A DNA stretch of 64,000 nt from Oikopleura dioica (Eukaryota; Animalia; Chordata), in the NCBI GenBank assembly GCA_907165135.1, contig OU015566.1, positions 6,882,001-6,946,000 on the forward strand, given 5' to 3'. This document shows, piece after piece, positions 45-64,000 of this stretch (its first letter is position 1; the number at the start of each line of letters is the position of its first letter). The notes under the pieces were generated by a model. That model saw only the letters and a program-made list of their open reading frames with translations, ran no database searches and was not told where the DNA came from. A program made the position numbers and the translations under genes.

Positions 45-559
45 GGGTGTCAACATTGATTTTTGCATTTTTTCTGTTGACACCCTTAAAAATTAAAAAT
101 TGAATTAAAGTGACCTTTTTTATAACGAATCATCTTCAACAGTTCATGAGATCTCAATTTGAGACTTTCATTATTGACATAAATTGACCAGACGCTGACT
201 TTACTTCAGACATTTTAATCGTTTTCTGATTGCGCTACATTTTGCGTGCGTTTAGCCCATCCACGTCTTGCAATTTGTCGATTTGAATAATTTTATTGAA
301 AGCTTTGCGATCAGACTACTGATTGATCGAGGCGATTAACATGTTCTTTTCTAGCGACCGAATGGCCGAAATCCAAGTGGACATAGATCACAATGAAGAT
401 GATCGAGACGTAAGTACCAAGCTCTTCAGATCTTGAGACTTTTAACTAAGTGGGCTTATTAGTAATTATCAAGAAACGCGGCTATTTTAAGTGCACCAAA
501 GAGGAATTTTTACTATAGAAACCTTCGAGCGAAGTGGGTGAAAAACCTTGTTGACACCC
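45..559. mobile_element. TTAA-flanked TIR remnants (GGGTGTCAACA), Kolobok-like
   Basis: TTAA|GGGTGTCAACA at 41-55. Its reverse complement TGTTGACACCC|TTAA occurs at 75-89 and again at 549-563. Confidence 0.5.
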
Positions 560-59982: not shown

Positions 59983-60882
59983 GCTCTTTAGTCACACTTC
60001 TGAACGAACAAGTCCGCTGAAATATCTCTCGAGCATTCTACCAGGCCTAGGCCGTCCTCTTCCCTTTCAGGGATCATTCGATTATCCACTAAGAAATCCT
60101 TCGTTTTGAAAAAAAAGTTCAAAGCTCATAAAAACATATGAAAAAGTTCATTCAAAACACTCCTCAAAAGCAAAAGCTACACTTTGTAGCTCTCTAAAAT
60201 CCTCAAAAAAGAATTTCTAAAATGAAGATTCTAAATTCGCACATCGATGAGTGGTGATTCAACAGACTCCATAGCGACGGAATACAGAACACGCGCCCGG
60301 GGCAACAGAACTTGCTATAAATTTTGAGTGAGGATCTTCAAGTTTCCCCTCTGTCTACATTTTCTCCTCCTATAATTTGAAATTTCTCACAGGCAATTAC
60401 GGAAACTTATAAAGTTGTTTTTCGGAAACAGATTTTTTTTATGAAACCGGCAGTAAAAGGCAGTAGGATAAGAAACAAATGCAAAGAAAAAGAGTTGCAA
60501 TAAAGTCTTCCAAGATTGTCTTTGATGAAGCGGAACTTTTGAAGCGCAGGTTTACAGAATACAGAAAGAAGCTAAAGCTATCAGACGTTGGGATTGCGTC
60601 TGTGCTGGTTGATGTTGTTGGCGTGCGTTGACGTCAGCGTCGACTAGAATTATTTTAGTATTGTATGTTCTACGAAAATTAACCCCTTCAGAGTTGTTTT
60701 TTCTGAAGGCTTTCTTTCAGTAAGGGCCGCCATTGTCCGAAAAATTCTACTTTTCAGCGAAAGACAAGGGATAAAACATTCATGGAATTCGTTGAATTAT
60801 TAACAATCAGCACTGTGAAAGCGCACAGTGAAGCGACTGACAGAAAAGATAAACCTATTCCACAATAGTTCGCCAGTCGCCA

Positions 60883-63800
60883 CTATGGGGCTTGTTGAGC
60901 CCCAGAGGGCATATTGTGCCCAATCTGTATGATTATCATCTTCTTATGGACACCGATATAGAAAATCGTTACGAATAAATTTATACTGAACAGATTGCTC
61001 GATTACTTCGCAGAACGCTGCTTGTAATTAATTATTGCCCGGCAGTAACTTATAAAAAACAAAAAAACATACGTGAATAACGCTTTGGGGATGAGCAGGT
61101 TGCGAGTGCGGGTGGAGATTGAGGATCGGAGACTGAGAGTTGTAAACTTCCATTTTGATTTATTCACATGAAATTGACAAACAAATTGATGAGAGAAAAT
61201 CTTTGAGTAAACCGATCCTTGATGTTGCTGCTGCTGTTGTTGTTGCTGCGACATGAGCTGTGGATGGTCTTGATTTGTCTGGTACCAAGCGTTATTCATC
61301 TCAGCTCGCGAGACGGATATATGCCCAGCTTGAGCGAGGCTTCTACTCGTTGTCGGCTGGAGCTACATTAATTATAATAATTTATCGTGATTTGAATTGG
61401 CTAGACTTTTTTTGGAAAAGAATTAATTCTTAGATGAAATGAATTTTATTCATTTTCCGTACCTCCGTGAGCGTGGGCCCCGATGTTGATTTGTTTTCGA
61501 CAGGGATTTTTGGCAAGATGCGCTGGTGCTGGTGATGCGGCCGAGTTGCTGCTTGTTGATTCTGATGTACCTGATTTGCGTGAATCAAGGGTCGAGAATG
61601 ATGCTGTGCGTTTTGCGGCGTCGCCATTGTGATTGTTGGAGCTGAACCAACTGGTTTATTATCCATGCAAAAGTACTTCATTCTGCCGCGATTAATGATT
61701 GACAAGGGATGTGGAGAATAATTAGACTACTCACTTGCCCCTTTTTCTTTTGAACTTTTCACGCGGTTACCTGAGGAATGATTTTGAATAACAGAAGTAG
61801 CTTGAATTTGTTGTTGTTTTGACAATTGTTGATAATTGTTCGGCGCGTGACTGGTGATTGGGACTATCGTCGAGACTTGAGTCGCACTGACACGGTTGTT
61901 ACTTGCGGATTGTTGCTGCTGATGGCTAGTGCTGTTGTTGTTCGATTTTGGTCCTTTCTGGAGCAATTGAACGCCGGATGGGCGAGAGGAGGAAGAGGCA
62001 GTTGAGGAATTCGAATTCGTCTTTCCGCGGCGAGAGGAGCTACTCGACGGCGGAGCGGACTGAATTTATTCTGTAAGGAGTACAGTAAGATGAGCAAAGA
62101 AAACAGCAGCGCAATGATTAAAAATCGAAAAATGGAATGCTTGCCAAAGTAGCCGGCAGAAAGCCGAGAAGTCAACACGGAGGAAAATAAGAATCAAATA
62201 TGTATCGATGAGGATGGGTGATTGGTTATTTATTACCTGTACAGAGCCATCGGCGCCTGTCACCACTTCGATAATGCGCGGCCGCTCGATCACTGTCGCA
62301 TCTCCTTCACCGTCTTCGACGATTCCGACGATCCAAGCTTGGTGGCCCTCGATTCGTCGCAGCTCGGCGCAAAATTTCGCAGCCTGAATGACTCCAATTG
62401 AGTTCGCGAAATTGGAGAGCTTATGATCAATTTCTGCTCGCCAAGCAGTTTCAAGAATTGTATAAAAATAAATTATACATAGCAAGAGTCAGGACGAAAA
62501 ACCACGAGTCAATCCTCATTTCACAAAGAATTAAGTAACCTCACTGTGACAAGAATCAATCGATAGTATAGTTTCAGGGCATTAATCATTTACAGCTCTT
62601 GCTTTAATTTGGCACATAAGCTCAAGCCAAGAGGATTTGTTATTTCCTACCTCTTCGCGAGGGAGGGCAATGAGCATCCCTCCGGAGATTTCAGGAGCGA
62701 CGCCTTTTGCTAGACCGAAGGAATTGCCCATTGCTTTCGCGATCGTGTTCATTTTCGCGAGAACCGGCAGATTGTGGATCACAAAGTTGACCTTTTTCTT
62801 CTGTCGCTTTGCAAGGAGTTTAGCGTGACCCAGAATTCCGTAGCCTTGTAAGTTTAAAAAATAATGAGTAGATTCTAGCATGGGTTCGAGTTACCGGCGA
62901 CAGCTGTTGCGCCATGCGCGTTGAATTGAGCCATGAAGCGTGAGGCGTCGCGATTTAATCTCACCATATTAAACATTGCATCCTAAATAATAAATTTCCT
63001 TCTTCCCGAGGATCGCTCATCAATTTAAAATGAAATTTGTGAGGAGATAATAACCAATGTTTCTATTCGCCAAACATATTACAGTAGAGTCTATTCAAAA
63101 GACTATAATCAGATTGAGAATATTTCAGACTAACGACATAATTGGCAATTATGATGGGTAGGATGACTGGACTGTCAAAAATACACTAATTCTTCTGGAA
63201 CTGAATAATTGGCTGATAGAGTGGTCGTCTTTTGCCCAAATTGTCTATTGCCCAACTTGGGTAAAAGTCGGCCTGGGAAAAAGTCCTATCCTCCGACAAA
63301 CCTATGAATGTCAAATCGTTGAATTCCTCCTATTGAAGGAAATGCCCTCAAAGAACCATTTTTTCCAAAATTAACATAAGGGGTCAGATCTGAAAGTAAG
63401 GAGAGCTTACCTGATAGCCTCGTTCGACATCCTGTTCGGTAACAACTTGCTTCAGTCGATTCCATTTTTCTTGGTTCTGTTCCATCCACATATGCGCCAT
63501 ACACGCCACGTGAGTTCCAAGTGGCTTCGTTAAGACTAATTGGTTGATTTAATTAACGGGAGCTTATTCAATCTCCTTCTATGGATTGACCGAAAAACCT
63601 TACCTAAGACATCGCCCTTTTGTGCCGCGTCGGATGCCACAAACTCGCGACTGCCAACGTTCATGAACGCATTTACTTGACCAGAAATGGTCAGTGACGG
63701 GTTCAGCGCAAGCGGCGACTGGGTCATTATTGCGTTTGCCCTTTCACAGCATTCTTGAAAACCAGCCACGATCTTTGGAAGGACAACATCGCGTTCACGG

Positions 63801-63944
63801 TCGGACATTTTCGTCGACGAGGTCATCAGAAGATTGACTGTTTCTACTTCAACGACTCCAGCGGCGTAGATTGGGGCAAGACAATGAGCACATGCTGCTT
63901 GACCGGCTATGTGCGGGTCGTCTACTGGTGGCAGGGTTTGAAAT
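60883..63944 (-). CDS. Divergent selenophosphate synthetase (SPS/SEPHS) homologue with Q/N/S/H-rich C-terminal extension; N-terminus outside the window
   Basis: [31 protein letters not shown]|[52 protein letters not shown] are colinear with SEPHS1/2. No stop before the 62239 donor. Alternative last exon would end at 60581. Confidence 0.9.
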
Positions 63945-63947
63945 CTG

Positions 63948-64000
63948 ACGAGCTCACGAGCACGTGAGCACGTGAGTGAGCTCGATGAGCATGCTCACGC
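63948..64000. repeat. GAGCAC/CACGTG-rich short repeat in an SPS intron (truncated by the window edge)
   Basis: GAGCTCACGAGCACGTGAGCACGTGAGTGAGCTCGATGAGCATGCTCACGC. Confidence 0.5.

Follow-up and report, generated by a model that had tools for sequence, protein, structure and literature searches.

Background

Several animal lineages carry SPS1, a paralogue of selenophosphate synthetase (SPS) that has neither the selenocysteine (Sec) nor the Cys of the enzyme SPS2: SPS1-Thr in vertebrates, SPS1-Arg in insects, known as 'inactive selenide, water dikinase-like protein', SPS1-Gly in ascidians and SPS1-Leu in clitellates (Mariotti et al. 2015). The non-Sec Gly form has been dated to the ascidian root, and the SPS2-Sec gene on scaffold_18 of the larvacean Oikopleura dioica was reported as the only SPS gene of that species (Mariotti et al. 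2015). The role of SPS1, or SEPHS1, and its need for a nucleotide site have been open questions since the discovery of the paralogue. Here we describe a further SPS gene of O. dioica, on the minus strand of a 64,000-nucleotide (nt) stretch of the Okinawa assembly (GCA_907165135.1, contig OU015566.1, positions 6,882,001 to 6,946,000; the whole stretch is called the window below). Its SPS body has lost most of the active-site residues, and its reading frame continues into a glutamine-rich tail.

A transcriptional role for SEPHS1 was proposed in 2025. As given in the title of PDB entry 9HJT and by Bianchi et al. 2025, Zincore consists of SEPHS1 and QRICH1 on zinc-finger factors on DNA. The glutamine-rich QRICH1 binds SEPHS1 through its DUF3504 domain. 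QRICH1 has been reported from vertebrates only, lamprey included, and tunicates have another DUF3504 gene, CBY34656 in O. dioica (Kojima & Jurka 2011). Extended or fused SPS proteins are also on record, such as the SPS2 of Plasmodium, which is extended by over 500 aa, and the fusions with NADH-dehydrogenase-like, NifS and methyltransferase sequences, with no convincing SPS fusion in non-protist eukaryotes (Mariotti et al. 2015).

How does the present gene compare with these systems? With Ser or Ala at the Sec position and an SPS2-Sec in the same species, it falls under the SPS1 definition of Mariotti et al. 2015. It has the fold of SPS1/SEPHS1, a catalytic position without Sec or Cys, a coexisting SPS2-Sec, a very low dN/dS and the C-terminal PR(I/V)IEV motif; the ascidian SPS1-Gly is nearest to it in the tree and has the same type of N-terminus and tail. 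It differs from the known SPS1 forms in that Ser/Ala is at the Sec position and Arg at Lys32, and Asp69, Asp110, Asp265, Asn106 and GGQT are replaced. It belongs to the superfamily of SPS2/SelD and has their fold, but differs from them in the missing Sec/Cys, catalytic Lys and most metal ligands, and in a long tail that O. dioica SPS2 does not have. Structurally, its SPS body matches the 9hjt chain of SEPHS1, with the Arg371 equivalent and the hairpin conserved, and as in Zincore a disordered Q-rich region accompanies an SPS module. In the present gene, however, a single chain holds both the SPS body and the Q-rich region, and the tail has nothing like the DUF3504 of QRICH1. Like the extended SPS proteins it bears a large extra polypeptide of unassigned function, but theirs are N-terminal additions to presumably active enzymes and this one is a disordered C-terminal tail found in tunicates. 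SPS tails of this kind are unmentioned in the main text and supplements of Mariotti et al. 2015.

Results and Discussion

An SPS paralogue with a dismantled active site

The gene corresponds to the annotated protein CAG5105092.1 (P0184 in our set; 100% match), a product of 617 aa from 12 exons recorded as Oidioi.mRNA.OKI2018_I69.chr1.g1826.t1 of Oikopleura dioica OKI2018_I69 chr1, with the UniRef label 'selenide, water dikinase'. Its exons align colinearly with residues 90-376 of human SEPHS1 (3fd5, 9hjt; E-values 1e-9 to 3e-22). An AlphaFold2 (AF2) model of the sister-lineage protein P0183 has a pLDDT of ~90 over residues 60-375 and below 50 over residues 385-618, and its top Foldseek matches are 3fd5 (TM 0.92, 48% identity) and the 9hjt SEPHS1 chain (TM 0.88, 47% identity). 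As modelled, the SelD/SPS fold (PurM superfamily) is kept in the paralogue, especially in the C-domain and in the PRIIEV-bearing hairpin at the C-terminus; this motif, which the preliminary description had found intact, is read in exon 7. The profile scores fall off mainly in the N-terminal half. The Pfam AIRS N-domain scores 22.3 bits, just below the cut-off of 24 (fish SEPHS1, 54), AIRS_C scores 68.5 bits (76 in fish SEPHS1), and TIGR00476 scores 131.4 bits, marginally above the cut-off of 125 (larvacean-type proteins 131-147, as against 267-297 otherwise).

The active site was surveyed at 13 positions, in human SEPHS1 numbering, in an alignment of 154 homologues. The canonical SPS1/SPS2 set at the Sec site, K32, D69, D87, N106, D110, GGQT, D265, the T of ETSGG and R371 is x, K, D, D, N, D, GGQT, D, T and R. 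At the same positions all 11 proteins of larvacean type, a clade of about eight forms, show S/A, R, S/G/N, D, H, P/A, QSP(L/I), A/E, I/T and R, so that the loss must be older than the divergence of the clade. We call these relatives larvacean on the basis of the tree and a common spliced leader only. The glycine-rich loop thus lacks Sec and Cys, with Ser there in O. dioica and either Ser or Ala in its relatives. Of the four metal-binding Asp, Asp87 alone is kept in the family, Asp69 being replaced by S/G/N, Asp110 by P/A and Asp265 by A/E. Lys32 has become Arg. In the Okinawa gene itself ACANVLSDLYAMG is altered, GGQT reads QSPL, ATDITG reads ATAVAG and PETSGG reads PEISGG, which bears out the earlier observation of a conserved SPS fold with replaced motifs. 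We take Lys32 (E. coli Lys20) to be catalytic and the four Asp to bind metal, as in human SPS1 and E. coli SelD. From the residues present we infer that selenophosphate synthesis, or the usual binding of ATP and Mg, would be impossible for this protein.

Comparable partial or full losses among ~150 homologues are confined to SPS1-Leu of clitellates and a handful of isolated proteins (P0091, P0073, P0049). P0091, a protein of 393 aa, has a dismantled site of T, R, G, G, S, S, GQQI, A, M with the Arg371 equivalent kept, and lies on a very long branch. The clitellate SPS1-Leu proteins P0252, P0259, P0244 and P0276 have lost Asp87 (now S or C); in P0252, P0259 and P0276 Asn106 is A and Asp110 is N as well, and P0244 has Cys at 106 and keeps Asp110. 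Given these clitellate proteins, larvaceans are not the only group in which an SPS1 paralogue has lost part of its metal site.

Has the pocket been rebuilt for something else? The replacement residues (H, P/A, QSP(L/I), A/E) are themselves conserved across the clade, and Asp87 and the VDDP motif are kept, as would be expected of a neo-enzyme or of a sensor, for instance one for a selenium or sulfur compound or a nucleotide. On the other hand, three of the four metal ligands, the catalytic Lys and the Sec/Cys are gone, and we know of no precedent for such use of a remodelled SPS pocket. We consider a new enzymatic or sensing activity very unlikely.

Selection on the paralogue is strongly purifying. 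In comparisons of three lineages of O. dioica (OKI, L006 and L007), with dS up to 1.5, dN/dS is 0.025-0.045 in the SPS body and 0.19-0.23 in the tail; between the related proteins P0177 and P0178 the tail has a dN/dS of 0.05, with 88% amino acid identity at a dS of 1.6. The proposal of an apparently catalytically dead but selected SPS paralogue is upheld both by these values for the body and by the loss of the signature residues in all larvacean-type members. The identity of the gene, and its description as a pseudoenzyme with a tail, we regard as highly probable.

Gene model and splicing into the tail

Our rebuilt 12-exon model translates exactly to P0184. Exons 3-12 are inside the window and exons 1-2 are past its end; the whole locus is referred to as L005, where window position x is L005 position 4666+64000-x. 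The exons in the window are the following, with a slash marking an exon boundary.

63604..63924, minus strand: exon 3, N-domain with replaced motifs including TQSPL; acceptor CCACCAG/ within the target-site duplication of a miniature inverted-repeat transposable element (MITE)
63411..63535, minus strand: exon 4, ending ...ERGYQ
62895..62982, minus strand: exon 5, DAMFNM...GATAVAG, with Ala at the Asp265 equivalent
62651..62844, minus strand: exon 6, YGILGHA...PEISGG...LPREE
62237..62383, minus strand: exon 7, C-terminal end of the SPS fold with RPRIIEV (Arg371-equivalent codon 62278-62276), ending ...DGSVQ/ in phase 0
61771..62059, minus strand: exon 8, first tail exon, ...IQNHSS; its junction is identical to the mRNA junction of a sister lineage
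61463..61641, minus strand: exon 9, tail, APTITM...GPTLTE
61218..61362, minus strand: exon 10, tail, LQPTTSRSL...polyQ, with a non-canonical GA donor (61216-61217)
61073..61146, minus strand: exon 11, tail, with the conserved C-terminal motif SPILNLHP...HPQSVIH
60581..60643, minus strand: exon 12, last 20 residues STLTST...HRRNPNV and the stop codon, outside the interval of the preliminary description

The frame was said to continue by splicing from the SPS fold into a Q-rich tail of about 250 aa, and it does so: the model that agrees exactly with CAG5105092.1 has 249 aa after the ...DGSVQ junction (258 aa from PRIIEV), rich in S/Q/N/T/P (S 16%, Q 16%, N 9%). Some details of the earlier model have to be changed. 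Its 3' end at 60883 belonged to a wrong last exon, the conserved one (HRRNPNV and stop) being at 60643-60581 as in the sister lineages; the tail introns have phases 0,1,0,1,0, with a GA donor at exon 10, in place of 0,1,0,0,0; and the competing acceptor lies 11 nt upstream, not 8, and is absent from the sister-lineage contig L002. The gene has two GA...AG introns, the second having its donor at the ancestral exon 2 (L005 4447-4448); the ancestral exon 2/3 intron reads CAG/GAAGG.

Is the tail really part of this gene, or were Q-rich exons of another gene, or non-coding low-complexity DNA, joined to it by annotation? Exon 8 contains no Met, and the competing AG 11 nt upstream is present in this genome. 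Against this, at least seven related forms have uninterrupted full-length open reading frames (ORFs) on mRNA contigs with a spliced leader or poly(A), the tail is under purifying selection, and L002 is without the competing AG. These proteins were found by searching with exon 3 as the query against 1.84 billion representative proteins and then with a word index, which gave a family of long proteins of 484-620 aa encoded on contigs of ~2 kb by a single uninterrupted ORF. The contig L006 aligns with the genomic contigs L002 and L003 in exon blocks of ~99% identity, and its junction ...TCTGTACAG/TCAGCGCCG... (GSVQ/SAPP) corresponds to a GT...AG intron of 122 nt, the homologue of the junction first proposed. 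Contigs L010, L011 and L012 start with the 22-nt leader end TCCGATTTCGATTGTCTAACAG, the same as on the O. dioica SPS2 mRNA contig L009, and L011 has the leader at its full length of 40 nt and ends in poly(A); we take this leader to be the O. dioica trans-spliced leader. The spliced mRNAs L006, L007, L001, L010, L011 and L012 therefore confirm that tail exons are joined to SPS exons, and the same holds for all relatives that are represented by RNA-type contigs. A separate gene made of the tail exons is rejected, as mRNA contigs span the junction. An annotation artefact is already contradicted for the sister lineages and can hardly be right for the gene in the window.

The tail is older than the loss of catalysis

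Across the relatives the tail measures 190-258 aa, is rich in Q, S, H and P and is predicted to be disordered; a Pfam search of the tails matched no family. Within this fast-changing sequence there are conserved islands: (V/I)TGDDGSVQSAPP..RR directly after PRIIEV, TLTPR, LTELQPT and, at the C-terminal end, Y..P(I/V)L.N..H.Q.VI(Q/H).

The tail is not confined to the dead form of the enzyme. The ascidian SPS1-Gly proteins (SPS1-Gly/SPS-ae genes) and four probably thaliacean proteins, whose active-site motifs are intact, have the junction motif DG[ST]VQS[AVI]PP followed by a Q-rich tail. As the tail and the junction motif are common to catalytically intact ascidian proteins, the tail is, by comparison of these sequences, a tunicate feature predating the loss of catalysis. 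Among 131 homologues with a PRIIEV motif, tails of more than 60 aa are confined to the tunicate clade, apart from P0032 and two probable vertebrate mis-annotations. P0032 (389 aa) is probably a stolidobranch ascidian SPS2; it has a 113-aa P/Q/H-rich tail of its own without the DGTVQSVPP motif, and resembles the Botryllus SPS2 printed in the supplement of Mariotti et al. 2015.

Relation to SPS2-Sec and the ascidian form

The separate Sec-type SPS2 that had been looked for exists in the species, being both described by Mariotti et al. 2015 and present among the transcripts. Contig L009 (Ga0123377_1042450, reverse strand) was recovered from a metatranscriptome by means of a short degenerate pattern. 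It holds the full-length SPS2-Sec mRNA of O. dioica, which has a spliced leader, an in-frame TGA and all catalytic residues but no tail. Its C-terminal end reads EVQIVNV in place of RPRIIEV and so has Gln at the Arg371 position. The Rfam scan for SECIS elements found none on L006, L007 or L001, nor in the ~350-nt 3' untranslated region (3'UTR) of the SPS2 mRNA L009, so that the scan is powerless here. A second, different SPS2-Sec gene of larvacean type is represented by its exon 1 at the end of a genomic contig (L008, Ga0115011_10048659, 154-197, reverse strand), which reads MEGFDPEKEGL...LKG-TGA-GCKVPQEKLL.

In the maximum-likelihood tree the larvacean clade (support 100/100, stem 1.04) lies inside a tunicate clade (98/99) with the ascidian SPS1-Gly and the four probably thaliacean proteins. 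Independent characters agree with the tree: the larvacean proteins have in common with the Gly isoforms of ascidians an N-terminus M(A/S)LRPRFDP, the absence of Lys27 in front of the Sec position (LHG or LLG for LKG) and the junction T.(E/D)DG(S/T)VQS(A/V/I)PP before the Q-rich tail. Forcing the larvacean clade together with O. dioica SPS2 costs 16.6 log-likelihood units (p-AU 0.035 in the approximately unbiased (AU) test). A recent larvacean-specific duplication of SPS2 is rejected as the origin by this p-AU value and by the N-terminus and tail held in common with ascidian SPS1-Gly, although not firmly, the SPS2 branch being long. The gene in the window is the Okinawa representative, in O. 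dioica, of an SPS1-type paralogue that has neither Sec nor Cys and is larvacean-wide; the species also has an intact SPS2-Sec. The tunicate non-Sec form probably predates the split of larvaceans and ascidians and would then be older than inferred by Mariotti et al. 2015.

The two O. dioica genes have diverged from fish SEPHS1 in different parts. The paralogue has 32-40% identity to it in the N-domain, 63-67% in the C-domain and 64-67% at the C-terminal end; for O. dioica SPS2 the values are 54%, 47% and 39%. Every larvacean and ascidian member has RPRIIEV unchanged, where O. dioica SPS2 reads EVQIVNV.

A mobile element in the Okinawa copy

The 5' part of the gene is interrupted by a MITE at the edge of the window.

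64123-63932 in window-equivalent positions (L005 4543-4734), no strand assigned: hAT-type MITE of 192 bp with a perfect 17-bp terminal inverted repeat (TIR), CAGGGTTTGAAATCTGA; its right part, 63932..64000, is in the window
63924..63931 and L005 4535-4542 (past the window), no strand assigned: the two copies of an 8-bp target-site duplication, CCACCAGT, that flank the MITE

The element contains three internal repeats of ~41 bp. It has no counterpart at the orthologous genomic loci L002 and L003, where the exon reads ...FVASDVVYPPVDDPH... and the Asp is kept. The point of insertion is in the ancestral exon that matches annotated exon 3, at the codons ...VVYPPV/DDPH.... Two statements of the preliminary description are explained by this. 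The aspartate of the TTD motif was thought to align to F, but the codons RFQTL (window 63946-63932) lie within the 17-bp TIR of the MITE, and the sister lineages read ASD-VVYPPVDDPH with the Asp kept; and the 5' boundary placed at 63944 falls within the MITE, the annotated acceptor being 63924.

Because the MITE sits in an exon of this assembly, the product of the Okinawa gene is uncertain. Straight reading through the element leads to an in-frame stop. The annotated model bypasses it in frame by splicing from a GT that lies 36 nt within exon 2 to the AG of the target-site duplication. This costs 19 residues that sister lineages keep and that make up a core beta-strand (E76-85 of the modelled P0183). 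A transcript of the Okinawa lineage was not found, the P0184 cluster having one member and a tail-only search matching two sister lineages only, and the protein collection searched contained no Okinawa-type full-length ORF. The AF2 model of the annotated 617-aa isoform is less confident than that of the full-length sister protein, but its alignment is shallower (20 versus 49 rows), so that this comparison is uninformative.

Is the gene in the window, then, a disabled or hypomorphic allele of an otherwise functional family, its protein truncated by the MITE or deprived of 19 core-strand residues? The perfect TIRs and 8-bp duplication speak for a recent insertion. The MITE is absent from L002 and L003, and the stop on read-through, the residues missing from the annotated isoform and the lack of an Okinawa-type ORF in the protein collection agree with such an allele. 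The in-frame GT...AG intron that takes the MITE out counts on the other side, and O. dioica tolerates many non-canonical introns. The downstream exons are also all intact, with an omega of 0.025 for the body, but a recent insertion would not alter that signal, and this one looks too recent to have marked the exons downstream. A disabled copy is a serious possibility, although not the outcome that we expect.

A non-enzymatic role?

If the pocket no longer works, what is the protein for? In the explanation that we favour, the paralogue would be a non-enzymatic dimeric scaffold carrying the conserved 'SPS1 function', which in vertebrates would take the form of transcriptional co-regulation with QRICH1 in Zincore. 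The tail would supply motifs for partner binding, activation or localisation. Larvaceans would have divided the labour: the active SPS2 would have kept the chemistry of the N-domain while its C-terminal end drifted, and the paralogue would have done the reverse. We judge a larvacean SPS1-type pseudoenzyme scaffold with a tail to be the best explanation overall, with moderately more confidence than doubt.

The Arg371 equivalent, stressed in the preliminary description, is indeed kept in the paralogue and is Gln in the active SPS2 of O. dioica. Arg371 presumably clamps zinc-finger factors on DNA. A role related to that of Zincore is favoured because the hairpin and Arg371 are kept here but not in SPS2, because QRICH1 is known from vertebrates only and because the tail is Q-rich. 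QRICH1 had been listed as a gene to look for in the same genome; the published record confines it to vertebrates (Kojima & Jurka 2011), and the tunicate DUF3504 protein is a candidate partner of the paralogue. By analogy, co-regulation of transcription might be the mechanism, a tentative reading that we think less likely than not. Further still, tunicate SPS1 might be a single-chain counterpart of Zincore, with a Q-rich effector tail of its own before QRICH1 and later, in larvaceans, a pseudoenzyme co-regulator without an ATP/metal site; on present comparisons this fuller version is rather unlikely.

Several points weigh against these proposals. Both 'inactive' and 'scaffold or co-regulator' are inferred from the sequence, and some binding of metal or ligand may persist, given the Asp87 kept throughout the family and the Glu that most members have at position 265. 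The tail alone is no mark of a regulatory role, as catalytically intact ascidian enzymes carry it too; Q-rich low-complexity tails are common, and this one matches no Pfam family. With its long branch (1.19), O. dioica SPS2 is not reliably placed in the tree, and the rejection of its grouping with the larvacean clade by the AU test is only marginal. Finally, the Okinawa copy, with a MITE interrupting an exon, may be impaired.

A scaffold of another kind would serve the Sec machinery. The dead body would form heterodimers with SPS2 or bind SepSecS, SECp43 or tRNA-Sec, regulating or channelling selenium, and the tail would serve localisation or regulation. PurM-type folds are dimeric and the fold is kept here, the species uses selenoproteins and has SPS2-Sec, and SPS1 has been reported in complexes with Sec-synthesis factors. 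However, the dimer interface is formed by the N-domain, and in the paralogue this is the half with the lower conservation. Insects without any selenoproteins keep SPS1 (Mariotti et al. 2015), so that the conserved role of SPS1 is not tied to Sec synthesis. We regard a Sec-machinery scaffold as unlikely.

Neighbouring features

A tubulin gene lies upstream of the SPS paralogue at this locus and likewise in the orthologous metagenome contigs L002 and L003. Downstream of the stop codon there is one further conserved feature.

60530..60553 (L005 8113-8136), minus strand: block of 24 nt in the 3'UTR, AAACCTGCGCTTCAAAAGTTCCGC, the same in three lineages of O. dioica

This block is invariant although synonymous coding sites are near saturation in the same three lineages. 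An 11-nt indel beside it speaks against antisense coding, and the block may be a regulatory element.

Conclusions

The larvacean SPS1-Ser/Ala with its dismantled active site is a real gene, and the single-chain co-regulator is a reasonable hypothesis, not a result. The published account is revised on two points: the SPS genes of O. dioica number two instead of one, and the origin of the non-Sec form probably lies further back than the ascidians. A tunicate-wide disordered Q-rich SPS tail with conserved short motifs is newly seen, and the database label 'selenide, water dikinase' is very probably wrong as a functional name for the paralogue. The larvaceans offer a natural mutant series, as a clade that has long kept an SPS1-type protein under strong selection after its pocket was dismantled, and the paralogue has kept the C-terminal hairpin that the active SPS2 of the same species let drift. 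If the single-chain Zincore reading is true, the origin of the tunicate non-Sec SPS1 would move before the split of larvaceans and ascidians, and the essential SPS1 function would need no nucleotide chemistry.

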